Shown here one piece after another: positions 8,272 through 62,171 of a stretch of 64,000 bases of DNA. The position numbers were made by a program, and so were the translations under genes. How positions within the stretch are numbered: the first letter of the stretch is position 1; each line of letters starts with the position of its first letter. The DNA is from Paragordius varius (taxonomy: Eukaryota; Animalia; Nematomorpha): contig OZ176054.1 in the NCBI GenBank assembly GCA_964247055.1, positions 3,348,001-3,412,000 of the forward strand. The letters run 5' to 3'. Below the pieces are notes generated by a model that saw only the letters and a program-made list of their open reading frames with translations, did no database searches and had not been told where the DNA came from.

Positions 8272-8849
8272 ATGAACTATTTGATTCGAATTGGGGTATC
8301 TAAATACCCCAAATTTGAGTTAGGATTTTTAAAAAACTACTGAGAACGGCCAATTTAAATTTATGCTTCTATCCTAATAAAAATTATATAAATATGCCAA
8401 AATATTTGAATCAAATTTTGTTTTGCAAAAAAAGTTCCATGTCAAACTACTTCGACGCCATTTTATTTTACAAAGTTTTTCAAAATAACGTCTTTATTTA
8501 ATTTTAAGGGTAAAATTAAAGTTAATTTTTTATTTAAATTACATCTAACATTGAGAGAAATAGAAAAAGTTGTTGATTTTGCATTATTTTTAAATTTTAC
8601 CATTGCACGCGCGCCACGTTGACTAAATTTTTACCTTTTGGTTTTAACTTAAAATAAGTAATATCAAGTATTTTTGAATAAATTTTTTTATATATTTCGG
8701 TGTTTTAATGTTATATAAGTGCAAGATTTTGCCATGGCTTTGATTCCTTCCATATTTTTTTAAGAATGTTTTTTAAACAGGCCTGGGGTACTTAACTACC
8801 CCAATTTGAATCGAAGAACTAAAATGAATGTGTTGTATCTAAGTGTTAA
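8272..8849. mobile_element. piggyBac-like non-autonomous element (family B), copy 1
   Basis: ~580 bp homologous to three other copies; right end CCCCAATTTGAATCGAAG-spacer-AGTG|TTAA; left end degenerate. Confidence 0.75.
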
Positions 8850-8915
8850 ATCATTTATATAAACCATATGCTATACACTTAATTTCGACATCCTTTTACA
8901 CCATCTGAGTACACG

Positions 8916-16327: not shown

Positions 16328-18058
16328 ATGAATGATTCTAATCATGAAATATCTACCTTGAGCAACAAACTAAATTCAAGTGATTTGGAAAAAGCAACTA
16401 TTAATCAAGAAAAACGCTTTGAAAAGATTAAACATAAGAAAAAGCGAAAGAAACATTATTTTAATCAAGCCGATTCATCTATTATAGAAGAAAAACTTAC
16501 CAAAAATCTTATATCCAAATTCCATGCTTTATCATCTTCCGGTAAAAAGCAAAAAGATATAATTTTGTCTACCTATGATGAAACCCTTTTTCATCAAATA
16601 GGTCCTTACATATCAATATTTAATTCGGATTATAAATTTAATTTTTGCCTTCAATCGCAACATAAATTTTCAAAATATAAAGTTAAGTTGAATCAAACCC
16701 CTCATAACACGGTTTTCGACTCATTTATTTCTACAAAAACGCAACTTGTCACTCCTTTACCAACAAATAATTCAATAATGCCTTCAGTGTTTAACGATAA
16801 TAGAAATAATCCAAATGTTCAAAATAAACAAACATACGTCTCTTTACTGGATATTTCGAGACTTCGTCAAAATTCCATGATAAAAACGGATCCATCTCCT
16901 CAATCGTTCAATAGAGTTAAAATAAACGTTTCTGTCCCACCCGTTTCCGATGTGATTATTAATGTTAAACAATATTTGGCCACTAAACTTTACAATCGTT
17001 TTGGGAATGTTTCATATGATTTTTCAAATCCAAACGTTTCGTCAAAATCGATTCCTGATATTACATTGGCACAACTAAAATCAAATCTGGTAACTCAGAA
17101 AATAACAACAAGCGATAAAAATCTTGAGAATACTAACCAACCAAAATGTCCTTGGATTTGTAGTTTTTGCCAATTGCCAACTTTTTATAATCTTCTGCTT
17201 GGGGAATTATTTGGACCAATAACTGTGATTACTGACATAAATCGTCTGCTTGATAATGATGATGAAATTTTGAAATTGATAGATACGAATTCAATTTTCA
17301 AAAATGGCGAAAATGTAGAAAGACAACAAAATACATCCAATACTTTGGGTAATTCAGGTGATATTGCAGCTTCACCACTTAGAAAATCTAGAAGAATAAA
17401 TACAACGGGATCACTTGATCATGATAACTCTCATCTAACCAACGCCTTTTCCAATCACCGTTTAAACAATGTTGCTAATGCCAATTTTCAAAATTCTCTA
17501 AAACAATCCACATCTCCAACCTCTTTTGATGTGCAGAATAAGAATTCTCTGCAAACTAAACCATTGTTATTGCGATTTTATTTTCATACACCTTGTTTAC
17601 TTTGGGCTTCACATCTTAGAATAACATCCGTTGGTTATGAAAATTTGGATAAATGTGTGACATCGGCATTTTTTCGGGTATAAATTTTAAATTATAAATT
17701 TAGAAATGCTCTATATGCTCTAAAATTGGTGCCAATATTAATTGTTGTGGCAAAAATTGCTCATCTTGGTTTCATTTTTCCTGTGCCGCTCATCTTAAAG
17801 GTAAAATTTTCATGATTCTGTATGCAATTTTTAATTAATGTAATTTATCGCAATCGACTTTTTTGTTTAATTTTTTATCATCAAAGGTTATTAATATCTT
17901 TGCAAAAGTTACGTTCTATACAATACCATAAAAAACTATTTTAAAGGTTTAACTAAATATTTTATATTAATTTAGATGAATATACATTCGAAGAATCTTC
18001 TTTTTTAGCTCTATGTCCATTACACAAAAATACCCGAGAGAGTTCTTTTAAACGGTAG
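16328..18058 (+). CDS. TCF20/RAI1-like extended-PHD (ePHD) chromatin protein, 3 exons, about 509 aa
   Basis: Exons 16328-17677, 17704-17800, 17976-18058. CSFC..LGELFGP, long linker, FHTPCLLWAS, then KCSICSKIGANINC..CSSWFHFSCA..LCPLH: the split C2HC knuckle plus PHD of the RAI1/TCF20 family. Confidence 0.75.
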
Positions 18059-21087: not shown

Positions 21088-31433
<10,346 letters not shown>

Positions 31434-32255
31434 TTTGAATTTATTTTAATACGAGATAATTTAACACAAATAAATTAATTGAAGTTAAAGCGCAAGTAAT
31501 CACTTAATTGAATAAACAAAGATACGTGCAATAAATGTAATAAAAGACAAACAATTTAAATGGCCAATGCGAATACGTATTTTACTCCATTAGCATAACT
31601 TCATAGAACAGTAAGAATAAACATGCCTTAAATATAAAAATTAATTTTATTACTGAAAAACAGGTAAATTATATAAAAGAGACACAAATGCTACAAAAGG
31701 ATGTATCATGGTTAAAAGGTCCTATCTCACTGGCAGATGTATATATAGAGTATACAAAAAAATCTTATGATATATATGCCAATAGATAAATATACTGAAT
31801 TATCATAGGCTTTCTTTTGGGCCTTATGAAATATTTACAGTTAAGATTGCTTCATATGGAAGTAAAATCGTATTTAATTTAGAAATATGATGAAAACAGC
31901 ATTAACACTCTATGTTATAAATATTTAATTATATAAGGCTTTTCTATATAATTGGATTATCAACAATTCAATCCTCTCAAATTTAAATTTAAAGGTTTGA
32001 TGCAATCAACTTTTTTTGAAAAAAATTATGAGGTGACTAAATATTCAGCATCATGGAATCTTATAGAAAAAGTGTTAAAATATCTTAAGTAGTTTTTATT
32101 TTCTATCATGCATCAAAATAGCAGGAAATGACTTCCAGATTTGCCAAAAATTAAATATTTTTATTAATTTGTTATTCATTTTTATATTTTTCTGATGTAT
32201 TATTTTAGCATTTAGTTAAAAAATCTGGATAAATCTCGCCATATTTGGGTTTATA

Positions 32256-32776
32256 TTAACACTTCGCTTCAAATTGAGGTTGTATCTATATCCAAACTAA
32301 ATTTAAATTAATATTTTAAAAAACAACCGAAGGAAACGGTTTAAACTTATGCTTCTATCCTAATGAAAATTATATAAAATATCCATGTGATTTGTTTTGA
32401 AAAAAAAGTTCCATGTCAAACTACTTCGACACCATTTTTATTTCACAAAATTTTTACAAAAATCGTCTTCATTTTATTTTAAGGGTAAAATTAAAGCTAA
32501 TTTTTATTTAAATTACATCTGACATTGATAGAGATAGAAAAAGCGGTTTATTTTGTATTATTTTTTTATTTTACCATTTCACACATGTCACGTTGACGAT
32601 TTTTATACCTATCGGTTTGAGCTTAAAATAAGTATAAGTATTTTTAAATCAAATTTATTATATATTTCGGTTTATAATGTTATATATGTGCAAAACTTTG
32701 CCATGGTTCCTGGGGTAATTAACTACCTTAATTTGAATCGAAGGACTAAAATGAGTGTCTTGTATCCAAGTGTTAA
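32256..32776. mobile_element. piggyBac-like family B, copy 2
   Basis: TTAA|CACTTCGCTTCAAATTG ... AATTTGAATCGAAGGACTAAAATGAGTGTCTTGTATCCAAGTG|TTAA. Confidence 0.8.
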
Positions 32777-33273: not shown

Positions 33274-33780
33274 TTAACATTCCACTTCGATTCAAAATGG
33301 GGTGTCATTACCCCAGACTATAGTTAAGTTAAACTTTCAAAAACTAAGCCGATATATCTAAATAAAATTTGGTTTTCAAAAAAATTCCATATAAAACTAC
33401 TTCGTTGCCATTTTTATTCATCAACCTTTTAGCAAAATATCGTCGTTATTTGATTTTAAAGATAAAATGAAAGCTATTTTTTATTTACATCACATCTAAC
33501 ATTGATTGAAACAGAAAAGTGGTTTAATTTGTAATAATTTTAAATTTAACAAATGCACACATGCCATGTTAACTTTTACCTTGAGGTTTTGCCTAAAAAA
33601 AGTAATATCAAGTATCTTTAAATAGGATTTTTTATATATTTGGGTTCATTAATGTTATAAATGTGCATATTTTTGTCATGGTTTCAATTCATTCCATGTT
33701 ATTTATTTTTAACCGTCCTCGGGTTAATTACGCCGAATCGAATTGAAGGACTAAAATGAATGTGTTGTATCCAAGTTTAA
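33274..33780. mobile_element. piggyBac-like family B, copy 3 (more diverged)
   Basis: TTAA..CACTTCGATTCAAAATGGGG ... GAAGGACTAAAATGAATGTGTTGTATCCAAGT|TTAA. Confidence 0.7.
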
Positions 33781-33839: not shown

Positions 33840-35821
33840 ATGCTTTCAAGCGATATCGATTCAGACGCCGAAGTAAATAAATTTTTTAATTAAAGTTACA
33901 AGACGCATTTGAGAAAGGACAGCTAAATCCAGGAACATATATCTCTGAAGACGCACCAAAAAAGTTTGTTTATAATAAGGTAATTGTTTTATTTAAAATT
34001 ATTAAACCTTAATTTAAATTTAAATATAATTGCAGACAGCTCTTGATGGTGCCTTTCAAATTCTAAAATCAAAGCGTTCAGATTTTTTGTTTCCTGAATA
34101 TTTGGATGCAAGTGCACCCAATATATCCCTTGATGCAGATCAAGATGTATATGATTTTAAAAACCCTCCTTCAAATACATTAAAGAAAAATGAAATGACT
34201 AAACAACAAGAAAATTTGGCCAAAAACGATTTTCAACGGGAGACATACTTGTATTTGTTCTTTGCAATTTATTTTTTAGTTACAATTTAGCCCAGACATC
34301 TGCTTATAATCTTATTTCTGAGTTAAACAAAATTATGAAAACCCAAAGGCCAGATGATTATTTTGCAGAAATGGTTAAATCAGATCAGCACATGGATAGG
34401 GTAATATTAAATTCACTGATTCTGTGTATCAGCATTAACATTTTTTGTAAAGATTTAATAAAATTCAATGAATTAATATTCAAGTTTTGTGGGATTCAAT
34501 CGTTAAAATAGATTGTTTATATATTTTTCACGTTGTAAATTTCAGATAATTAAATATTCTGGTTTAAACCATTAGTACATTTAATGGTGAAGTTTCACTT
34601 ATTGACATAACAAAAAACAAAATATACATTGTATATCAAAAATAGATATTTTATAATTATTTTTTCAATATAAAATTTTTATTTATTTGCTTTGCTAGAT
34701 AAAAAGAGTCCTTGCTGCCAAGCAGGCTAGTTTACAACGCATCGAAAAAGTCACGAAAGAACGGAAAGAACGATCACTTTCCAAAAAAATGGCTAAATTG
34801 GACAAGGCTAAAAAGCAGGCTGACCTACGGAAAAAATTGACTAAAACTAAGCTTTGGAAAAAGAGTTTACATACATTTTTTTCACTATAATTTGGCTATT
34901 TTATACATAAAATTAGACTATATGACAGTACATTTTCAATGCTCTTATTATATATCTGTTTATTATTTTTTAGGCCATATTAATTTTTCCAAGTTAATAT
35001 TTTGATTGACTTCTTTTTTCGCAATTAAAGTTATTTATTGCCTTCTATTGCCTTTTACTGCTTATAATGTTTAAAATTCTATCTTCATTTCTATTTTATA
35101 AATATTTAATGTAATAGGACCATATTGCTACAATATAATATTTTTAGGAAATAGTGTATGGATTTTTCGTTTATTTTAATATTATATAGTCTTTTTAAGA
35201 TTTCCACTTTTAAAAATCTTAAATTTAATCAAACTAATGCATTTAACAGGGTATATCGCTTAATTTTTATGCAATTTACCGATATAATAATTAATAAACC
35301 AGCTATACAGAAATTAATAAAGTTCTCTATATTGTATTTTTATATTCTAAGAAATCAATGTTGACAATTTGGATGAAGAGTTGTCGACTTCTCAGCCTGG
35401 TAATAAAAAGAAAAAATTTGGGCAAAAAGATGATTTTAAAAATAGAACTTTGAATGTTCCTGGAAATAAAAAGCTTAGGTAACATTTTTTTTTTATTTAA
35501 TTCCAAAATTTTATGGTATTTTGGCTCTAAATTTTTAATATTTTTAGTAAAAAAGCACAATATAAACTCAAAAAATTTGGGAATAAAGATCACGTCACTG
35601 AGGGTGGTTTTAAACGCAAACGTGGTTGGAAACGGAATAATATGAAGAAAGATGATTTAATCGCCTTCACCTCTAAAAACACCAATAATAATAAAAATAG
35701 GCCTGGTGCCAAAAATAAACACAAAAATTTTGGGAACCGGAAAGGACAGAATATATCTAAAAAGAATAATAATAACAATAAAAAATTTGGTGGTCAGCGT
35801 AAGAAAAGACGACAAAAATAA
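33840..35821 (+). CDS. EBNA1BP2: rRNA-processing protein EBP2, 7 exons, 339 aa
   Basis: Exons 33840-33872, 33896-33979, 34036-34250, 34280-34400, 34699-34864, 35352-35478, 35548-35821 (1020 nt). ELQDAFEKGQLNPG, NDFQRETYFYNLAQ, TQRPDDYFAEMVKSDQHMDRIK, Lys/Arg-rich C-terminus. Confidence 0.92.
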
Positions 35822-36263: not shown

Positions 36264-38136
36264 TAAAATAATAATTTGTATTCTCGTAAAATTTATTAAA
36301 TTCAAATTATATCCAAAATTTTTGATACATGAGAGTATCTTTTTCAATGGATTAAGTAAAACAAAAGAAAATAATAATAAGATTAATTAAAACAATATTT
36401 GAAAAATATAATTATAAATTATGATAACAAAAAATGCAAAGTGATGTGCATGTGTTATTGTTTTTTTCTTGGCGTGGTAAATATTTTGAAGTAATCTGTT
36501 TCTTTTAAGAAGTCTTTTGTGACTTTGTTAAGTTCTTTCCTTTCTTCTCTTCTGTTGATGAGGTAGGTGTATACTGTTTGAATGGATAAAACAAGCCTCC
36601 AAAATCAACCTATCGGATAATTTGTCGGCTTGTGCTACAATGGATGCTGGGCCGAAGGTGTGGCCTGTATTCTTGCAATGGTCGTAGACGGCCGAACCTT
36701 TTCTATTGTGTTCTTTTTCTCTAATATTTATAGGGCGTTTAGATTGTCCAATATAGTGCGCTGGACAATCATTACATCTTTTGTGGTAGACGGTACATTC
36801 GTTTTTTGGTTCTCGGCGTGTCTTAACAAACTTAATAAATTCTTTGGTGGTTTGTAATAAGCACATCCTTTTTTGTAATAATGTTGTTAACTTTTTTGGA
36901 TGTATTGTTATAAGTCAGAAAATACATCTTTCGGGCGGATTTTGCTTTTCTTTTGGGTTTAATATATTGTTTATTGAATCTGTTTTCCAATGCTTTTTAT
37001 AACCTTGATCAAGTAATATGGTTACGATTTCTGATGTTTGTGATGTTCGTACCTTTATGTCATTTGGTAGTCTAAGCGTTCTTTTTAGAAACGCGTTTGT
37101 TATGGCTTTGTAAGTTGCTACTGGATGGTTAGACGTAATGGGTAAAAATTGGTAAGAGAAAAGTTCTTTATAATGGACTTGTATGGATATACTATTGATT
37201 CTACGGGTAAGATTGAGGTCTAAAAAGTTGATACTGTTGTTTTTTTCTTCCTCTATTGTTAGTTTTAACTCGGATATTTTGTTGATAATGTTTTGAAAAA
37301 CTTTTATATTGTCAATGGTGTCGATGATTAAAATATCATCCACATAACGGGTATATAGGTTTGGACGAAATTTTTCAAAAGCCTGTTGCTCAATTAGTCT
37401 CATGCAAACTTCACCAATGATTGAACTGAATGGTGAACCCATTGGAGTTCCGCGAATTTGTTTATAGAAACTATCATTAAACGTAAAATAAGTATTATGC
37501 AGCGCAATATTTATTAGGGATTGAAGCGCACTTCGATGGATATGACTGTTAAAATAATCAATGTTATCATTAATTGTTTTGTTTAACGCCTGAAACGCTA
37601 AGATGTAATGATTGTCCAGCGCACTATATTGGACAATCTAAACGCCCTATAAATATTAGAGAAAAAGAACACAATAGAATTGGTTCGGCCGTCTACGACC
37701 ATTGCAAGAATACAGGCCACACCTTCGGCCCAGCATCCATTGTAGCACAAGCCGAAAAATTATCCGATAGGTTGATTTTGGAGGCTTGTTTTATCCATTC
37801 AAACAGTATACACCTCATCAACAGAAGAGAAGAGAGGAAAGAACTTAACAAAGTCATAAAAGACTTCTTAAAAGAAACAGATTACTTCAAAATATTTACC
37901 AGGCCAAGAAATAAACAATAACACATGCACATCACTTTGCATTTTTTGTTATCATAAATTTATAATTATATTTTTCAAATTTTGTTTTAATTAATCTTAT
38001 TATTATTTTCTTTTGTTTTACTTAATCCATCGAAAAAGATACTCTCATGTATCGAAAATTTTGGTTATAGTTTGAATTTAATAAATTTTACGAGAATACA
38101 AATTATTATTTTAACATAAAATATTCGTTCTCGTTG
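36264..38136 (-). mobile_element. 5'-truncated Penelope-like element (RT plus GIY-YIG) with ~517-bp inverted arms and a 14-bp TSD
   Basis: Minus-strand RT (GTPMGSPFS, YTRYVDD, INFLDL, SNHP) and GIY-YIG (CNDC..YIGQSKR..REKEH..LEACFI). Arms 36262-36780 and 37600-38115 are near-identical inverted repeats. ATTATAGATTCAGT occurs at 36250-36263 and 38137-38150. Confidence 0.9.
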
Positions 38137-42300: not shown

Positions 42301-45300
42301 ATGAGCGAAGACCATTCATCGCGACCCCACAAGGGAATTCTCAAAACCTCCTCTAGTATTGATGACCATCGCAAAAAAGGTTCTGAACGTAAAGAAAGGT
42401 TTTTTATTTATTTAATATTTTAGCCTTAAGGACGATATAAAATGGGATGAAATGAATATATTGGCCACACTGCATCCCGAGGGTAAAGATTATGGCCATA
42501 TGAAAGTTGATGAACCAAAAACTCCTTATTCCTATGACTCTGCCGGCTCATCAGAGCTTGATCCTAACCAATTGGCAGCATCGTAATTTTATTATATTTT
42601 CCTTTATTTGCAATTATATGATCTAATTATTTTTTCTAAAAATATAATTTTCGGTGTGTGTAATGTTTTTAATAAATATCTGTGTAATGAAATGCTGTTT
42701 CTATCGATTTTTACATTAAAAATTAATAAGACTATTTGTTTTTAAGCTAAGTGTGAATAAGTAACATAATGTTAATTCTGACCATTTGATGCTTTTATAA
42801 AATTTTAATTTGTTTTTATCAGGATTTAAAAACTCATTGCATTTATTTAATTATATAGGTTTTTTATATTTAATTAAATTTTTCAACAAGTTTTTTAGAC
42901 TCTATTATTATTACATATTAAAAATTTCTTTAGATTGAATGCGGCAGTTAGTCACTCAAATGAAAAATCTGAAGCTAAACGGACCTCCCCTCCCCGACCA
43001 CATTCACCACCTCCCCCCTTATTAATTGCTCAAGAGGATAATCTTGATTTTGATGAAGGTTTTTTTATCAACTAAAATAAATTTTTAAGGGAAAAAATTA
43101 TTTTTTAGTTTTTCATTAACGAAATAGCCAAAATACTTAACTTTCAAGCTTAATTTCTTGCTTCTATATTTTTTAGGTTTTTAGATTTAAGTAAAATATT
43201 TTGGTAAAGTAAAGATTACGTTGAAGGTTTTTCGTTTAAAAATCGTTAAATTTTTATTATTAAAAAATATTTTTCATCAAAAAATAATTTTACTTCATTA
43301 ACACTCCGATTCAAATTGGGATATCTAAATACGCCAAACTAAATTTGAATTATGAATTTTAAAAAATTACTGAAGGAAACGGTTCCAATTTAAATTTATG
43401 CTTCTATCCTAATAATAATTTTATAAAAATGCCAAAATATCTAAATAAAATTTTGTTTTAAAAAAAGTTCCGTGTCAAACTAGCTTGACGCCATTTTTAT
43501 TTTAAATATTCTTGCAAAATACCGTGTTCATTTAATATTAAGGGTAAAATTAAAGCTAGTATCTTATTTAAATTACATATAACATTGATTGAAATAGAAA
43601 AAGCCATTTATTTTGTATTATTTTTCAATTTTACCATCGCACACATGTCACGTTGACTAAATTTTTACCTTTCGGTTTTAGCTTAAAATAAGTAATATGA
43701 AGTATTTTTGAATAAAGTTTTTTATATATTTCGGTTTATTAATGTTATATAAGTGCAAAATTTTGCCATGGTTTCGATTCCTTCCATATTTTTAAAGAAT
43801 TTAATTCTAAACGGGCCTGGGGTATTTAACTACCCCAATTTGAATCGAAGGACTAAAATGAATGTGTTGTATTCAAGTGTTAAAAATTAGTATTTTAATA
43901 TAAGTTAATTCGTTTACTCCGAAACGTAATATTTATATTTAACAATAAGATTATTTAAAGGTATATTGGGAATGAAAGTTGATAAAATGTTTAAAGGCGA
44001 ATCTACAGTGTTAATGATATATTTAGAAAATTAATTTTTTAACATAATTTTTTTAAACTAATGAATTTCCGGTGTTTTTTCACACATTTAATTTGTTTGA
44101 CAAACCCTTTTTTTGTTTTTATCCACTAAGTTAATAGTAAGAAATTTATTATGAAGCGACAAAGGGAGTTTATATATTTTTTTAAATAAAGTTTTAGTAA
44201 GATATTAGGATGATTCTAGAATATAAAAAAATTGTAAATTATCCCAAATATTTTTATTATTACACCATATGGTATCGCGCGCGAAATTAAGGTATCTAAA
44301 CTTATTTAAAATTGCATCACTAAATATATTCGCCAAAACGATTGCAAACGCAAAATGACTCCTAATTTAATTGTAAATTAATAGTTAATATTTGACAAAA
44401 AAATATTTTCCAAGTTTTTTGTCTCCCTAATCGTATATATATCGATAAAAAAGATTCAATTTTTTCGCTAAAATTTTTGAATTTTTTATTATTTTTTTTT
44501 CCCTACTTTTATGAATATCAATTTTAAATTAAATTTAAATATAATTTCGCTAAAACCGTTGTTTTTATTTTATTTTCCATATGTGTGTTTTAATAAGCAC
44601 ACATCGCTTTCCAAAACATGCGCCGTAAACATTACGATGAAGGACACTTTTTTGAGATTGGTCGTTCTCTCGCTGCCGCCGACGAAGAAATTTCAAATTC
44701 AACCTCTTTAATAAAAACAGATTCAGACAGCCCTGAAAAAATTTATGTTGTCGCAAATTTTGTTGACAACAATAGTTTAAGTAGCGCTCCTGGTGATATT
44801 GATACAAATAAACCTTTAATAATGAGTCATGAAGAGAAGAAGACTAAAACCACCATTTGTCAATCTTTGGTGGTAGAAAATTCTAGTAATATTCCCATAT
44901 CGTCAATTATTTCATCCTTGCCGACTATTGTAACAGATAATAAAGTTAATGAACAAAATGCTAAATCTAAAGAAGAACACACTTTCTCTGCGCTATTAAA
45001 TAATAAACCTTCTGTTGTTCCAGAAATAAATAAGAATAAAAACCCGGTTTCCGCAAAAACAGACCCGAAAAAAATAAGTAAAAAACTCCCAGAAACTAAT
45101 TCAGATGAATCCAGTTCTTCTGATGAGGAAAATGATTCTATAGCATCCACAAAATCGACCAAGAGCACAAAATCTCAAAAATCTCGCGCTAAAAAATCGC
45201 CTTTCAAAGAGGAATCATTAAAAACGTCTAAAACTAAAATTAGTCCTTCAAAAACCTCCATATCATCTGATAGTAAAAGTGCAAAATCAAGCGATAAAAA

Positions 45301-48012
45301 AGTTAAGAAAGTTTCTCCTTCATCGTCGCACAAAAAAGTTTTGTCGCCTTCAAAATCACAACAAAGTATCAACAAGAAAAAAGCGGTCACCAAAAATAAA
45401 TGATTTTTGCATTTTTAGTGCGCGGTTGTTAAATATTAATTTATCTGTTACATTCCAGAAATATAAAGTTTTAAAAAATCGAACTTTAAACATTTCAATT
45501 GTTTTACGCGTCGCAATATCAACCCATTTTTTATGCTTTCATAACGCATCGCAATAATGTAATTTTAAATTGATTAACCAATTTTTATATTTAAACATAT
45601 AAATTATGATTTAAAAATCTAAAAATCCGAATATCTAAAAATATCAATAAATTACGTTCATGTCGCATCGCAATAATATAATTTTAAACTGTTAAACCAA
45701 TTATATTTTCTCACTTGCAAATTATGATTCACGAATCCACAAATCCAAATTCAAAAGCATTAATAAATGGATTTATTTTGCTATTGATTAATTGTATTAC
45801 AGTATCGCTTATTGAAACCTGGTAGCTAAAGTATCTCCTGTTTAATTATGTTGGATTTTTTTCGCGTTCATAATTTCGTTAAAAACTTTTTTAAATAAAA
45901 GTAATATAGTTAATGAATGGATCGATACCTTTTTGTTTTCCTTTCCTTTTATGTCCTTCTACCGTTATTAGAGATTTAAAACTATTTTCATATTAACGGT
46001 AAATGCAATTACTATTATTATCCAATAATTTATTATTGGTTTTGCCATTAACGCTTGGCCTATCGACATGTTAATGTGTAAAGCTTTTAGATAAAAAAAC
46101 CTGATCTATTATTAACACATTGTTAGAATATCGTATTATTAGATTAATTTTATCATGAGTGTTATTGAGATTTAAACAGTATTTGAAATGTAATTTTTAC
46201 TAATTAACTTGGAAACCAGAACGGATCTCAATAATTAAAATGAAATGTAAAAACGTCGTTATCAGATTAATTGCAACTGAAGTGATTTATGTGATTAATT
46301 TTATCGCAATTGGCCAATAAACCCGCGCCTTTTATCAATTATTCCTTCTTTTTTTTAAAGTATAATTTATACGCATCTAATATAATCTTAACTCATTACA
46401 AAAGTAGGGAGGGATATTAAATGAATTTTTTAACATAGGAAATTAATTACATTTCCATTTTTGGAATATTTTTTGTACTGATACTATGACATTCATTGGT
46501 TCTGGATTTTACACGCTTTTTTAATCTCCTAGCTCTCTAATTTTTTCTGGTGACATGGTTAAAGCAGTTTCGATCGAATGTTTTGAGTTTAATCGTCGTA
46601 TCAATAATCCTGATTTTTAATTGTTTTTATTCAATTAGTTTGCAGCATCTTTCGCCAACACTGCATTTTCAATATATTTTTCATTTCCCCCTTCTTTTCA
46701 TATAAAAGTAATGTCAACATTTTCACCTATTCTTTGTTTCTTCAAAAATATAAAATATTTTATAATTATCATATGATAAAAATAATTTATTAAAAGTTAA
46801 AATAGTTTTATGTAAAATGTCAAAAATCATTGTTTACCCCCAAAAAACCGATTTCCATATGGGCATTTAAAACCGCAACACAAAATGCGTTATAAAAACA
46901 TGGATATTTGCTATTAAAAATTTATTTCGGTTTTCTGTTCAGGTTTTCTATTTTAACTGTTTTAAAATTACGGAGTTATATTAGGTCTAAATTAACACTT
47001 AAAAATACGAAAGATAGCGGTATTTAAAATGGCATTTCTTCACGCATGACTTTATCGCTGATACGCTATTCGATAACTAATAATTCACATTAGGCCACCT
47101 AAATTTAGTCTGATATGTAATTTTGATAAGCGTTTACAATATAACAGATTATTAACAGTTGTTAAAATCTGTAAGATAACGATAAATAAAAATTAAATAG
47201 AATTAAATGAAAGTATAAATAGAAATTATAAACGATATGTGAAACCCTTCGTCAATAGTAATCGCAGACTAGTTTCGTGCTTGTTGGCACTCATCAGTAC
47301 GACACAACTATTTGACTTGGGGTTTTCACATATCGATTTCGTATATATATCTAACTTTGCAATTTTGGTATAAATGCAGTTGGTTATACGAATTTAAATT
47401 GAATTTAATGGAATTTATGAAAATTAATCTGAAATTTTGAAAATAAACTGAAAATTAACTCTAGGGGTGAGCCTAGATTTAGAGTATAGCTACTTAGGGA
47501 TTTCATAGAAATCAATTTAATAACTAAGAAGCACTCTATTTTGATAAACATAAGATAAAGATGATATTTTAATGGCAAATAACGGATTGGTTATGTTTTG
47601 TAATAACAGTTGTTTAAATCCGTAAGTAACGATAAAGGAAAATTAAATTGAATTAAATGAAAGTATAAACAAAAATCATAAACCACTATAACAGATTATT
47701 AAACCTTCACATCTTACATCCAATCCACCCATAGGATTGTGCATTTCAAAAAATTTAATTAGATTGTTTATAAATGATAAATATGTATTATATATAGATA
47801 TGCAACACCATGACCCCGAGTTTGAAAAGAAACGACGTATGCATTACAATGAATATCAAGCCGTAAAATTGGCCAAAAAACTGCTATCAAATGAAATCCC
47901 TGACGCTGATAAACTTGCCGCCGAAGAGGATAGAAGGATCAAAGAGGCCGAACTCAATGCCAAAAAGAATTTGCAAATACTGTCACAATACAAAAATGGC
48001 CCCGATAAATAA
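42301..48012 (+). CDS. PPP1R2: Protein phosphatase 1 inhibitor-2, canonical isoform, 4 exons, 198 aa
   Basis: Exons 42301-42398, 42424-42582, 42934-43058, 47798-48012 (597 nt). [46 protein letters not shown]. Confidence 0.93.
43298..43883. mobile_element. piggyBac-like family B, copy 4 (PPP1R2 intron 3)
   Basis: TTAA|CACTCCGATTCAAATTGGG ... CCCCAATTTGAATCGAAGGACTAAAATGAATGTGTTGTATTCAAGTG|TTAA. Confidence 0.85.
44598..45403 (+). CDS. PPP1R2: Putative alternative terminal exon of PPP1R2 (395-aa isoform with a Ser/Lys-rich tail)
   Basis: Pyrimidine-rich acceptor ..GTTTTAATAAG at 44597, phase 1 like exon 3's donor. Opens [25 protein letters not shown], which aligns to the HYNE helix. 806-nt open frame; AATAAA overlaps the last codons. 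Confidence 0.7.
47156..47686 (-). mobile_element. Retrozyme-like / Penelope-derived non-autonomous insert (~451-bp unit plus ~78-bp terminal repeat, 16-bp TSD)
   Basis: TATAACAGATTATTAA at 47140-47155 and 47687-47702; imperfect direct repeats 47156-47233 and 47607-47683; carries a hammerhead motif. Confidence 0.7.
47261..47303 (-). ncRNA. Minimal type I hammerhead ribozyme
   Basis: Minus strand GUCGUA-CUGAUGA-GUGC(CAACAA)GCAC-GAAAC-UA-GUC^UGCGAU: full conserved core, 6-bp stem I, 4-bp stem II, palindromic ACUAGU in place of helix III. Confidence 0.85.
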
Positions 48013-49804: not shown

Positions 49805-52800
49805 TCAAGGATGACGTAAGACATTGAAAAATATTTCGTAGAAATAAAACATGAGACCAGTACTAAGACCGGCTTTAATAAGCGTTGGTAAAAGTCCCTT
49901 ATAGAATCCGGAATATCCCTCATTTTGTATCATTTTGGCTACACAATCTCGTAAACCCAAATATTGTTCAAACTAAAAAAAATTATAATAATAAAATATA
50001 ATGAATGCAATGCAATTTTATATAATTTAAAATTTGATTGCTTTAAGTACAGTAAATTATACGGACAAAAGTTAAAAATATAAAGACAAAAATATTTTAG
50101 TTCAAAAAATAACCCACATACTTTTTTAAACCTTAATTTATCCATAAAGTTCATTAAATTACAATAGTTATATACATAATTAATTGTGTCACCAATTACT
50201 CCATTTCATACTTTACAATAAACAATGAGTTATAATTACAAAAATCAAGATTAAATCAAACAGCAGTCTTTAGCAAAAAAATATTTTTTTTTTATTTTTA
50301 CTTTTTGTCCGTATAATTTCATATAAATTTGAATATTTTGTGGTAAGATAATTTTTTTTTACTTTTCCAAAATGTATTCGAGACTTTTCAAAACCCTGGA
50401 TTTGAAATCGTTTTTTGATTGTGTCCAAGGGATATACAATGATTTTGGCTAACGTACCGGCCATAGCACCATTAATTAAATTGAGATAAGATTTATTCTT
50501 TTTGTTGGCAGCCGTAGGTATGTTAGTATCTAAATAATTTTTTGGATTTATGAAATAAAACATAATGGAATTTCAAAAAAAGGTTTTATTGAAAATTGAG
50601 TTATTACTAAAAATTATAGGTAATTAACTATCTGATTGAAAATAAAAATATAATAAATCCTAATTTTTGTTTTAATCCAAGGTTTAAAAATGTCTGTGAA
50701 GAAAATTTGAAATAACAACATATAAAATTAATATTACAAAAAAAAATAAAAGAAATAATTTTTCATAATATAACCATATTTTTTTAACTTTAACTTTTGG
50801 AATATATAAAATAGAGATGTGATAACATTAAAATACTTCGCAATCGTATAGGTAGGTTGTATAGAAAATCAAGACTAAAAAATCGTCTCTTAAAAATATG
50901 TTTTAATAGGTTTGATTTTGATAGTTTTAATCATTCAAATTCTAAATGAAAATAAAAAATAAGGTTTACTTTGAAAGAAAGTTTTTGAATTAGTTCCGTA
51001 TAAAATAAATTTTAAGCCCGAAACAGTAAAAATAAAAATATACGCAAAATTATTTTGCATTGATAATAATATTAAATACCTACCTTTATTTCTCGTTTGG
51101 GCAACATTTGAATGCGAAAAAAATGATGATTGATTATGAGTAAAAAACGTGGTATTTTTGAGTATTCCATAAAACATAAAATAGAGACCAGAGTAAGGGG
51201 CTATTTGAATAAGGCTGGGTGTAAGTCCACGAAAAAAACCAGGTATACCCTCAGATTTGTACAGCAATTTGCTACCATGAATTACACCTTTGTAAATCTA
51301 TATAAAAAAATGTGTAAATATATGAAACGAAAATTTGCGTTACAACAAGATTTGTTGAAGGAACCGAGGACAAAAGTATTCTAGTATCTCTTTTTTTTAA
51401 TAATCATCCTCTGGTTGAAATTTCAGAGTTTGATATTTAGTTTTATTTAAGAAATTGTAAGAGTCGGTTTATTAAGCCTATTCTCTAGCAACAACTAATT
51501 ACTGTGTCTCATATTTGCTTATCGAAATAAGTATGAAAAAGAATTTTGAAAAATTTATACCTCTCTTTCATACAAAAAGAAAATATTTTTTTATTCAAAC
51601 CTTTTTCAAAAAACAACCAAATTTTTTTCGATCATAACATTTTAAATCTCAATGACAATGTTATTAAATTTTATTTTTCCGTTAAAGGCATCCTTTAGTA
51701 CAAACGACATTTCATTAAAAGTATAACTAATTCAAAAAACTTTAAAACTTTTAATTCTCCATATTTTCCAAATAAATAATTCCTTCTTTATGGATAAATT
51801 GATTTCAAAGAAATATGATGCTTTAAAAAAGGGTTGTTTTTTGATGTAAAAACATTGTTTTTTCAAACAAAAAAGTATGCTTACTTTATTATATAAAACA
51901 TCGATAAAACTTAAATAAATTAAAAGAGAAAAAAACCAAATTATTAGTTTATAAAAAAACTAAAATAAATACTTTTTTATTTTGATATTGTGATATGAGT
52001 CGTGTTTTAAACAAGTCGAATGGAAAGGTGACACAGGTAGCAGCCATCCCAGCAATACTTCCGCTTATGAAAGCGTTTTTATTCAAATCTTTAGAATGGG
52101 CAGTTTTAAGCTCCAATTGTTGAGCAGCGGGGTGAGGCCCGTTCAATTCATAATTTATTAATTGTTGATTTATGGTTTCGTATGTCACAAACTTGCTTTT
52201 CACAAATAAAAAATGGTAGAAAAATAAGCGTATATTTACATGTTTTTACTCAAAAATATCAAAATGAAGTGTTTTATAATATAAATTAGATGAATGATAA
52301 TTTTGATTACATTGAAGTTTTGGGAATAATAATTTTAAGTGAAAAGTTTGCACACTAAAAAACACCTGGTAATAAATAAATATTGAAAAACTGACATTTA
52401 TTTATTCTTAGAAGCAATTCGGTCAATATTTATTTATTATTTAAAATTTGAGATAAAGTTAACTGAATATACGCTCAGAATTAATTAAACTAAAAGAAAT
52501 CGACACTAAATTAGAGAAAAATATTCCAAAAATTTTGTCGTTTTAACCACAATTCATATATGGGTTATCAATAGATACTATTTCAATTGTAAACAAAATT
52601 AAATATCAGAAAAATATATAATGTTAATCCACAATTTCTATTATTGCGAATAAAAAAGTAATAATTTCAAAAAAAGAGCTAATGGGAGAGAAAAATTATT
52701 TTTTAAAAATAAAATAGTTGTTAAATTAAGATAACGCCTTGAAAAAAATCTTTATTGAAGCTATCATGATATAAATTTAGCTCCACCTAATAAGCTTTCT

Positions 52801-53335: not shown

Positions 53336-55424
53336 GTCTAAATAAACCAACGCTTTGGCAATTAATTTTTAAAACTTAACCGGTGTTACCTTAATATACT
53401 TGACAATTTTTAATTTAATATTGCATAACTTTGTTTTCATTAGTGGTGGAAGGTCATCAAAAACATTTAAACCCAAGAAATATATACCAGAAGGAACTCA
53501 TCAATATGATTTGATGCAGCATGCTGCCCTAACCTTAGGAAGCGGAAATTTGAGATTAGCAGTTATGTTACCCGATGGCGAAGATTTAAATGAATGGATA
53601 GCTGTAAACGGTAAATATCTTAATTTAAATATTATTACATATAAAAAGATATACCCATTAGTTATTTACGGCCATAAAAAATATTCTTTACCACAATTTT
53701 ATTAAAATGCTATTATTTAGAAACAACCCATAAACTTAATTTATAACGTCTTTTACCGATAAAATAGCTTCGAGTAGTGTTGATTTTATATATTTATACA
53801 TATATATCGTAAAACATGTTAATAACAAAAAAATTTAAAATGGCTTTTTAAAAAAGTTATCCGTCTCATTTCTTTGCTTTATCTATGATTTTATTCTTTA
53901 CCTTTTATAGTGGTTGATTTCTTTAATCAAATTAATATGTTATACGGGACAATTACTGAGTTTTGTACACCCCTAAAATGTCCGGTTATGAGCGCCGGTC
54001 CCAAATACGAATATCATTGGGCCGATGGAATCACCATTAAAAAACCGATAAAATGTTCGGCTCCGCAATACATTGATTATCTCATGACTTGGATCCAAGA
54101 TAGATTGGATGATGAAACATTGTTTCCTTCAAAACTTGGTAGGAATTTTAAAATTTTATTAATCGGTCAGACATACCGCTTATAAATATAGTTAGCTACA
54201 GTTATGACCGTGTTAAGGTTAAAAAGTAATGATAGACAGTGTAAACGCTTATGATTTCCAAAATAATTTCAAAGTTTTTTAAACCGAAAATTTTTTTAGT
54301 AACGGCATAATAATAACCTGTCAGCTCGTTTTTAATTAATAAATGATATTCAAATAATATTACGCAGACGAAAATTTTTGAACCAGTGAAAAATAACATA
54401 ATGATTAGCTGACCGATTATGAATGCAGTCATTTGGGTCATAAACTTAAAAATTTTTGTTAAAACTTATATATTACCGCTCAAAAATGTGGTCAACTACT
54501 CTTCCAACCTATAAGTTTTTATACGGTAAATAATGGTAATAAACTGTTTTAGATCGTTTTTCAGTTAATAACCGTTTTTAATTATTATAACATATGTAAA
54601 AAAGAATTTGCAAACGGTAAAAAAACTACATAATAACTGTGTAAGAATGCAGTCATTTGCGGTTACAACTACAATTGCAAACAGTATAACATCAATTGAA
54701 ACAATCCCTCAAGTCCCATGGAAAATTTTAAATTTTTTAAGATAATTTTTGATATATTTTTGGCAAACATATCATAAATTTTAACTTTGCCACAATCATG
54801 GTCTTTTGTGCATTAAAGATTTTATTTATACGTTTGGGCCTCAAAGTTTTTGACTTTTTTATTGGTATATGATGGCTATAAGTTCCTTTTACTTAATTCC
54901 ATTTATTTGAATTTATTTGCATCTATCATAATAGGTGTTACTTTTCCCAAAAATTTTATTCCTACCATCAAAGTTATAATGAAACGCCTTTTCCGAGTCT
55001 ATGCCCACATCTATTACCTCCATTTTGGCGACATTATGAAATTGGGTAAACATTTTTTTTGCTAGAGTTGAAAATTTGCTTTATGTTTCCAAAAAAATAT
55101 AATCACTAAAAATTTATTTAATCCAAACAAAAATGTATAATATGAGTTTTAATAACCACCATTTTTAAACTAATTGAGTGATTTTTACCTATTATTTATA
55201 CTTCAATATGTTTCAAGTTTATCATATAAATAGGTTTTTAGATGATTTTTTACCACATATCTATTTATATTTTACACTTAGGTGAGGAGCCTCACCTCAA
55301 TACATCATTCAAACATTTCATATATTTCACGCAAGAGTTCGATATCATTGATAAGAAGGAATTGGCGCCATTACAAGAGTTGATTGAAAAATTGTTGACT
55401 AAGGATTGTAATAGTAAAAATTAA
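53248..55424 (+). CDS. MOB1: MOB kinase activator 1 (Mats/MOB1), 5 exons, 220 aa
   Basis: Exons 53248-53261, 53444-53610, 53911-54138, 54935-55045, 55282-55424 (663 nt): MSFLFGGRSSKTFKPKK, LGSGNLRLAVMLPDGEDLNEWIAVN, CPVMSAGPKYEYHWADG, EEPHLNTSFKHF. Confidence 0.98.
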
Positions 55425-58900: not shown

Positions 58901-61900
58901 GATTGGTATTGTTGTATGGACTTTTATTAATAGGTGCTGGCATTCGAGACGAGGGGAATGAATATTTTCTACCAAAATTCATAGGGTTTCCATCATCATT
59001 CTCCTGTAATGGTTGTTTTTGTTGCATTCTTATTGCATTACAAGGATTCGTGGTTGATAAATCATTCATAGATTTATTGTTCCGCATTAAACTAATTTGC
59101 TTACGTGTATACATATTTAAACGGTGTTGATTATTAAAATTGGGTCTTAGTTCATTTGATCGACTTGGCAAGTAGCCGTCACGCCTTTTAGGGGGAATTG
59201 GAGGAGGTAAGCTATCTAAAAAATTATATATATATTATCAAATTTTCATAATTATAACAATTTGATAAAAATGATATTTTAAGGTTTTATAACCTCTGTG
59301 ACAATATTTTGTTGGTATCGAAGGGGGATCATTGTGTGCAGTCATTTGATTTTGTTGTGCCGTTCTCCAATTCCTTTGAATTATATCCTTTTCAAAATTT
59401 GCGTCCATATCAGGGAAGACTAAGCCTGCATTGTGTTGAGCCTTTAATTCCGAATAAGACATAGGTCTAGATTTGTCATTACGAACAGGGATTTGCCAAG
59501 AAGAATTATAGGGAATTTCATTTTTAGAGCAAATCGAAAATCTTTTATTGTTATGGTTGATGTCATGAGATTTAGGCATTATAGGATAATTTTTATTTTT
59601 TACATCCAATCGCTCATATATGTTGTTTTGGGCATCTTGGAAACTATGAGTCTGTTGTTTAAAATCATGGGGTATTGCTGCATTACTCGAAGATAGCAAA
59701 GTCTTTTTAGTTTTACGCTTGGCAAATTTGTTGGCTGCGTGGTTATGTTTTTTATCCATATCAATGTCCAGCTCTTCATAAATATCACTATCATACAAGT
59801 ATTTGAATTGATTGCTGATGAAATTGGATGTAATAGAAGATATGGATGAGTTGATACTTTTAATCGATCCCGCGTCCAACTGTTTTGTGGTATTGATTTT
59901 AGTTTTAGCTATCATTTGATCGATATTTTCTTTGGCCAGGAGTTCACTTAACATAAACTTATCAGTGCAAGAGGCTTTTTGATTCCCAAAATCTTTTTCT
60001 TGTTTTAGTATCCAATTACCATTTTCAATGTATGGCTTTTGTGCCCTCTTCTCGCTGGTCCCATTAAGGTCATCACAAGATTTTGAAAATTGGCAATTAT
60101 TTTTCATATTGTATGGAAGATTGTTTTGTGGAGAATAAGACTTACTTGGAAGCATTGATGAAGCCTCAGCATGTGATGGGAATGGATCAAAGGTGGTCAA
60201 AGCATGATATGCGTGGATATGACAATTATGTACATTTATAGGAGAATTGTTTGTTTCAATTGCATCCTTTGCATAACTACTCTTATTAGGGAAATTGATA
60301 GCTCTCTGTTGTGTGTTGTTTTCTGTATTGGCATCGAAATTGCAACCAATATAGTTGTTGCTAATATTTTTATAAGGGTTATTATGAGTATCATCCGATG
60401 AGTTATGACTGCTATAACCCGTATCTTCATTATGCAAAGCCATCACTCTAAATCCCCCCTCAATCCTTTCCATATCTTTAGGTTTTCCATTAAGCTTGGT
60501 ATCAAACCAAGCCCCAAACCGTTTATTAGGTTTAGATATCTCTTGAATATTATCGTCTACACCATTTTTGCGACCAAACTTATTGCAAATCGGTTCCGAA
60601 TTTTCTCGTTTTTCTTCTGCACTGCTGCTATTGCTTATGGGATAATCTGAAGAAGACGATGTTCCCTGGTGTTTATTACCAGCTTCTGCCAATGCAAATG
60701 ATTTTTGCATTTGCAAATCATAGTACATCATTCCATGAATATACGGATTATTTTTGTTTAACATTGGAGTTTTGGCCTCTAGTGCACCGTAAGACTTATT
60801 TTTATAGGGATTTTCTAGTGGCTTAATCAGCAAATTATTAAAATCATTGTGAAAATTGTATTGTTTTTGCTGGTGTTGCTCGTACTTATAATCGATAGGT
60901 TGTGAAATGGGATTCGTAACATCCATGTTATTGATGTTATGTGTGGATGCGGATTTTGTTTTATCTATGATGCATTTGTCGTTTAATTTTCCATATTTTA
61001 CTACGGGTGAATTTTTAGGGTGTGCTGATTTTTTGGTTGCATGGTCATTTATATTCTGTCTTGTTTTGTCCAAAGAATTGATAATGATTGGTGTTTTAGA
61101 TGATTTTGTCATGATTAATGGAAAATATTTACTAAATGCAGATTGATGGTGACTAACACTGCAAACTACGACATCACCTGAGTTGGCGAAATTTGTGTTT
61201 GCAAACATTTCAGATTTTGATAAACCAGATATATCTTTTGATACGTTTTGTTGTGGAGAGGACATTAAATTTTTTGAATCATTTTGATGATGGTAATAAT
61301 TATGCTGCTGCTGCTGTATTGACATAAGTTTTTTAAACAAATTCCATTGTGAATCACGACTTTTGTCTGTATCTCCTCCCTTTCCAGCTTCTTTTAAGTT
61401 GGGAGTATTTGAGTTTTTTGGGTTATTGTTCGAAGGCGTTGGATATACGATTTCGGTTTTGATGTAGTGCTTGGTAGGGTGATCGTCGTTTAATTGAGCT
61501 TCAGTGTTAAAAATTATTTTTTTATTATCGCGATTTTTATTCTCTGGGCCTTCATTGTAGACAAAAGATTGTGTTAATGTCATACCATTAGAATCTTCTT
61601 CTGCGGTGATAAAGGTATTACTTTTGCTCTCCCCTAAACTTGTATTGTTCACAGAGTAAGAAGAATTTTCTGTAGGTGTTGGCTCCTGATTTCGGATACT
61701 AGATTTTCTCCAGAGATCAAGCTTATCACTTTGCATATTTTCATTCTTTGCAGTAGTATCTGTGATCCAACTAAGTGTATTATCAAAATTTATTTTAGAA
61801 GCTAAATTTGCGTCAGATAGCGTGGAATCATATTGTGTTGATGATAAATAACTTGACCCAATACAATTGGATGAACTACCTTCAGTTATACAACTTAAAT

Positions 61901-62171
61901 CGCAATGACTTTTAGCCGAAGTGATACCGCCCAGTAGTTTTCGTTTTCCATACAATTTGTGTTCCGATTTCTCTTGTTTTTTATTGTTCGGGTTACCGGA
62001 GTCAGAATTTTTGCCGCGGTTCTGCCACCAAAATAATTTAGATTTCTGTATTTGGAGACCCGTTTTATTCCTTTTATTACTGTGCTGCTTATCGATTGCC
62101 ATCCCTTCATATGCTACTGAAAAATATTTGGAATTTTTTTTCGTAAAATTAGGTTCATTTATTTTTTCCAT
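55932..62171 (-). CDS. Uncharacterised ~1,387-aa Asn/Ser-rich, probably disordered protein (5 coding exons)
   Basis: Exons 59294-62171 (frame open to an acceptor at 62261), 58828-59215, 57560-58102, 56274-56513, 55932-56046; phases consistent (4164 nt). No recognisable domain. Confidence 0.75.

Follow-up and report, generated by a model that had tools for sequence, protein, structure and literature searches.

A candidate alternative last exon with a second HYNE-like helix in the Inhibitor-2 gene of a hairworm

Can one Inhibitor-2 (I-2; PPP1R2) gene supply protein phosphatase 1 (PP1) with two different active-site helices? The question is raised by 64 kb of DNA from the hairworm Paragordius varius (GenBank assembly GCA_964247055.1, contig OZ176054.1, positions 3,348,001 to 3,412,000 of the forward strand; hereafter the window, with coordinates counted from its first letter), which is 73% A+T and carries on its + strand a compact four-exon I-2 gene whose spliced product is 198 aa long. 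Inside the last intron of this gene, on the same strand, lies a 268-codon open reading frame (ORF; 44598-45403, with its TGA at 45401-45403) that is non-random, coding-like, similar to I-2 at its start and matched in phase to the preceding exon. A second I-2 isoform ending in this ORF is the best-supported option, plausible and as yet unproven; judging from the DNA alone, we give about even chances to its use as an alternative last exon of I-2. The initial annotation of the window had placed a same-strand, phase-compatible open frame at this position in the 4.7-kb third intron, with a start that forms a second HY(N/D)E helix like that of the canonical last exon and with a length of 395 aa after joining to exon 3. 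Each of these features was located as described: the likeness has E 3e-4 in BLASTP and E 0.0052 against Pfam IPP-2, and a junction of exon 3 with 44598 would keep the frame.

The ORF and its immediate surroundings comprise:

44558-44597, + strand: putative acceptor, a 70% pyrimidine tract ending in AAG, which overlaps two in-frame TAA stops
44598-44690, + strand: probable diverged copy of the I-2 IDoHA/HYNE helix, reading F-x3-RR-x-HYDE-G..., as indicated by Pfam, BLASTP and the ESM Atlas
44618-44620, + strand: first ATG of the open frame, with A at -3; the start codon if the ORF were a nested gene
44691-45400, + strand: orphan tail with a mixed middle, an acidic Ser patch and a Ser/Lys-rich basic end, exon-like in codon usage throughout
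45395-45403, + strand: AATAAA (45395-45400) and then the TGA stop; the frequency of the hexamer makes it not significant

The ORF is real coding sequence and not a product of chance. The frame starts at the AG at 44596-44597, immediately 5' of which stand two in-frame TAA codons, and its 268 codons are the third longest open run of the window. In 300 first-order Markov simulations of the window the longest open run was 210 codons, and when the letters of the ORF were shuffled 20,000 times the frame never remained open. With a codon table trained on ~2,200 codons from the other exons of the window, the ORF scores a log-likelihood of +0.43 bits per codon in its own frame and negative values in the other five, and this is true of each third of its length; known exons range from 0.31 to 0.71 on the same scale, while 297 intron controls never rose above -0.46. 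Two other origins were considered and set aside: a transposon ORF or fragment was ruled out because the stretch has no second copy within the window, and recent slippage was ruled out as the source of the tail because a search of the tail for tandem repeats found none.

The gene that hosts the ORF is recognizable as I-2 by its PP1 motifs. PPP1R2 contacts PP1 through SILK, a degenerate RVxF site, a site at Thr73, and HYNE inside the IDoHA helix (PMC11561318), and all four motifs, KGILK, KW, EPKTP and HYNE, are found in the 198-aa product. Scored separately, exon 2 reaches 49.1 bits and the last exon reaches 28 bits, both above the Pfam IPP-2 cut-off of 25. The last exon can also be aligned with PDB 2O8A chain I, at its residues 139-171 (E 2e-4). 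The third and last intron, in which the ORF lies, is 4,739 nt long, and the gene is laid out as follows:

42301-42398, + strand: I-2 exon 1, with the start codon and KGILK, a SILK-type PP1 motif
42399-42423, + strand: I-2 intron 1, 25 nt, GT...TAG
42424-42582, + strand: I-2 exon 2, with KW as a degenerate RVxF site and EPKTP as the threonine site; Pfam IPP-2 E 1.2e-12
42934-43058, + strand: I-2 exon 3, which ends one base into a codon (phase 1); donor GTTTTT at 43059
47798-48012, + strand: canonical I-2 last exon, with the HYNE helix, 71 codons; Pfam IPP-2 E 4e-6

Two features of its introns may be added here. Removal of the 25-nt first intron is required for an open frame, and two of the three I-2 donors, at 42399 and 43059, read GTTTTT; the neighboring genes use GTAA or GTAG. 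It might be that weak donors of this kind bear on regulated splicing of I-2.

The helix-like start of the ORF is very probably homologous to the canonical last exon, as suggested by comparisons of several kinds. IPP-2 is the sole Pfam family matched; the entire ORF gives E 0.19 and its first 47 residues alone give E 0.0052 (17.9 bits), values that are already corrected for 24,736 models. The match covers positions 100-127 of the 130-position profile, and the canonical last exon matches positions 95-125. When IPP-2 is considered alone, as the family expected from the context, the probability is ~2e-7, or ~4e-5 if all 47-residue windows of the intron in six frames are allowed for. BLASTP aligns the start of the ORF directly with the canonical last exon at E 3e-4 (10/34 residues identical, 29%), and in a language-model search of the ESM Atlas the nearest cluster carries IPP-2, at a weak score of 0.75 that is within the range of shuffled proteins. 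Furthermore, HY[ND]E occurs in the six-frame translation of the 64 kb at exactly two places, both in the I-2 gene, one in the canonical last exon and one in the ORF. Compared with PPP1R2 as known from PF04979 and 2O8A, the extra exon opens with the shared pattern F-x3-R-[KR]-x-HY-[ND]-E, but it reads HYDE, its would-be helix contains two glycines, and it continues into a 240-aa tail that is absent from known I-2 proteins.

When the two exons and their flanks were aligned as DNA, likeness was confined to the helix core. Because the helix copy has diverged far from its parent and the intron flanks no longer align, the duplication must be old. Within the ORF, some 4.9% of point substitutions would turn a codon into a stop, so that ~39 stops would be expected per unit of neutral divergence over its 801 nt, with indels uncounted. 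We infer from the age of the duplication and from the intact, codon-biased frame of 801 nt that the ORF has been translated and has probably been under long-term selection.

We therefore suggest the following scenario for the origin and use of the ORF. The I-2 last exon would have been duplicated in tandem long ago, so that a second copy came to lie in the intron that precedes the original; the new copy would have retained the start of the active-site-covering helix, with HYDE replacing HYNE, and would later have acquired a disordered tail of 240 residues that ends in a basic Ser/Lys-rich stretch. It would serve as a proximal alternative last exon, with the donor at 43059 spliced to the AG at 44596-44597 and the transcript ending soon after the stop at 45403. 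The resulting isoform would keep the SILK, KW and threonine-site regions and exchange the helix and the C-terminus. When exon 3 is joined to 44598 the frame runs uninterrupted for 395 aa, and the phase 1 end of exon 3 fits an acceptor at 44596-44597, although by our estimate chance alone would place a phase-compatible AG in the short open lead-in in about one case out of two. Pyrimidines make up 70% of the 37 bases that precede the AG, level with the better true acceptors of the window. Tandem exon duplication is an established route to alternative and mutually exclusive exons, including alternative last exons. The I-2 case has in common with it a diverged, same-strand, phase-compatible copy in an intron beside its parent, with both copies intact; it differs in that the two copies have 71 and 268 codons, that only the first ~30 residues can be aligned, and that splicing to the second copy is predicted.

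Several observations weigh against an alternative last exon of I-2. The acceptor reads AAG, whereas 13 trusted acceptors of the window comprise ten TAG and three CAG and no AAG; these were placed by homology in I-2 and in four neighboring genes that we take to encode a mitochondrial carrier (50270-52245, - strand), MOB1 (53373-55424, + strand), GFAT (30332-30958, - strand) and EBP2 (34030-34508, + strand). In a crude matrix built from the 13 sites the candidate scores -1.6, which is the median of the window's 2,458 AGs. Seven codons into the frame there is an ATG with A at -3, so that independent translation is possible. With regard to the likeness itself, the 17.9 bits of the ORF start fall under the Pfam cut-off of 25, phmmer with the helix copy gave no match to the solved I-2 chain 2O8A, and the copy carries its glycines at two positions. 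Searches for relatives also weigh on this side: a word search found no homolog of the entire ORF or of its residues 1-40, and phmmer (HMMER) found no credible one among 1.84 billion protein representatives. The sole phmmer match, a 2,912-aa protein at 26% identity, was judged to be a false positive inflated by six identical repeats, and an exact look-up of the 261-aa product that would start at the ATG returned no match. Finally, a search of sequencing runs found the stretch in DNA-like runs only; it was absent from the runs recorded as RNA, and the putative RNA runs, which were tiny, contained none of it. The blank among proteins says little about conservation, because a 977-aa ORF elsewhere in the window (59238-62171, - strand) has no match in the same collection either, not even itself, so that the species apparently lies outside it.

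Among other explanations, the one that survives best is an independent single-exon gene nested in the intron, which we consider possible, if unlikely. It would have a promoter of its own within ~43885-44617 and would be translated from the ATG at 44618 into 261 aa; its product would start within the old helix motif and would be without the SILK and KW docking sites. Such a gene would fit well with a coding-like ORF behind a weak candidate acceptor, with the ATG and its A at -3, seven codons past the opening of the frame, and with an E2F-like site, rare and rich in CpG, that precedes the ORF by ~320 nt:

44276-44285, no strand assigned: E2F-like site GCGCGCGAAA, CpG-rich, a putative internal promoter element

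The initial annotation had reported this site near 44276, where it was indeed located; TTTSSCGC has five matches in the 64 kb, against ~1 expected from composition by our estimate. What distinguishes the nested gene from a spliced exon are six codons that follow the AG and precede the ATG. They include a Phe at the conserved spacing before RR-x-HY, and once they are removed the IPP-2 match is gone (neither the 261-aa nor the 41-aa version gives any match up to E 10), so that the likeness to I-2 depends on codons that would have been free to drift under a long-standing ATG start. Since stops stand directly upstream of the AG, these six codons can be translated only if the upstream exon, exon 3, is spliced on; and since the IPP-2 match needs them, a spliced exon is favored over an ATG-started nested gene. 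In addition, selection would be expected to reach a new exon duplicate first by way of the acceptor that was copied with it, and not by way of a new promoter.

It is also conceivable that the ORF is a duplicate or an insertion whose expression has ceased or has yet to begin, in which case the frame would still be open only for lack of time since the event or since use was lost. The weak splice site, the lack of relatives and the lack of RNA support would all agree with this. We nevertheless regard it as improbable, because the strongly diverged helix and the flanks without similarity indicate an old duplication, under neutrality the ~39 stops per unit divergence would be expected to have interrupted the 801 nt, and codon usage is exon-like along the whole ORF. 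Least probable of all is that a real coding ORF unrelated to I-2 happens to begin with HYDE: an identity of only 10/34 residues, a Pfam score below the cut-off, the failure of phmmer to reach the solved I-2 chain and an Atlas score that shuffled proteins can attain leave some room for it, but three methods give IPP-2, at the right profile positions and with a per-family probability that stays at ~4e-5 after correction for the whole intron in six frames, and the match shares the strand of the parent exon, lies in the intron that directly precedes it, opens the frame and has a fitting phase.

In the ORF, the helix-like start is followed first by a middle part rich in Ser, Ile and Asn, then by a stretch rich in Lys, Asn and Pro, next by an acidic patch of serines, and finally by an 82-residue basic end (Ser 29%, Lys 29%, ~5% Pro; isoelectric point 10.7, net charge +21) that contains SPFK once and SPSK twice. 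The initial annotation had listed this Ser/Lys-rich composition, the acidic Ser patch and the basic end with its three motifs, and all were found; the three S-P-x-K sites fit the consensus of cyclin-dependent kinases. The AATAAA that it had noted at the stop is present at 45395-45400 but is expected by chance, since this hexamer occurs on the + strand once per 315 nt. AlphaFold gives the ORF alone a mean pLDDT (predicted local distance difference test) of 40, and the tail is accordingly predicted to be disordered.

Its description as histone-H1-like, by contrast, was not borne out. The tail and the middle part match no Pfam family at E up to 1, and hence not Linker_histone, which represents the globular winged-helix domain. 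H1 tails are Lys/Ala/Pro-rich. The orphan tail is Ser/Lys-rich, and what it has in common with the C-terminal domains of linker histone H1 and with the SPKK-type tails of sea-urchin sperm histones is a strongly basic end with S-P-x-K sites; it differs from H1 in having no winged-helix globular domain and little Ala or Pro. The phrase is thus best read as only an analogy, a resemblance in charge with no family relation.

It would be tempting to go one step further and to suppose that the single hairworm I-2 gene encodes two PP1 regulators with a common docking half and different helices, the second of which is tethered to chromatin or to another polyanion by a basic tail under phospho-regulation. 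We put this forward as a doubtful extension of the isoform proposed above. If it were true, the IDoHA module would have been exchanged naturally and the control of PP1 thereby retargeted or retuned, with an effect on the phosphatase or on localization. How I-2 acts is debated, as it has been seen as an inhibitor, an activator or a chaperone, and the HYNE/IDoHA helix is central to the debate (PMC11561318). An isoform with the docking half but with a replaced helix and a basic tail would, if real, amount to an experiment already set up by nature on the contribution of the helix. The finding has a good basis as an annotation hypothesis for a phylum that has received little study; it does not amount to proof of an isoform.

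A limited search of the literature found no description of an I-2 isoform with an alternative IDoHA helix, nor did we find spliced-leader trans-splicing described for Nematomorpha. A comparison is offered by the human PPP1R2 paralogs in sperm, PPP1R2P3 and its relatives. They likewise represent extra I-2 forms with altered regulatory residues and are tissue-restricted in use (PMC3606321). Each of them, however, is a retrocopied gene of its own for the whole protein, not an alternative exon, and is without an added basic tail.

Several other elements of the window deserve mention. The 977-aa ORF at 59238-62171 and a second long ORF at 16328-17683 (+ strand, 451 aa) match no Pfam family, and a word search with the former found no relative; both may be lineage-specific, fast-evolving proteins. 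The last I-2 intron also contains, upstream of the candidate exon at 43297-43884, a copy of a ~580-bp repeat family (76-87% identity), further copies of which lie at 8283-8850, 32255-32776 and 33348-33780. In the same intron, at 47257-47308 on the - strand, there is a match to a hammerhead ribozyme (Rfam HH9, 29 bits, E 1.8e-4, below the gathering score), which lies between two 84-nt direct repeats of 88% identity (47150-47233 and 47601-47683). Elsewhere, at 36528-37921, a reverse-transcriptase fragment (RVT_1, E 0.002) is flanked by two inverted ORFs that weakly resemble GIY-YIG (E 0.03), and this region looks like the debris of a Penelope-like retroelement, a group known to carry hammerheads.

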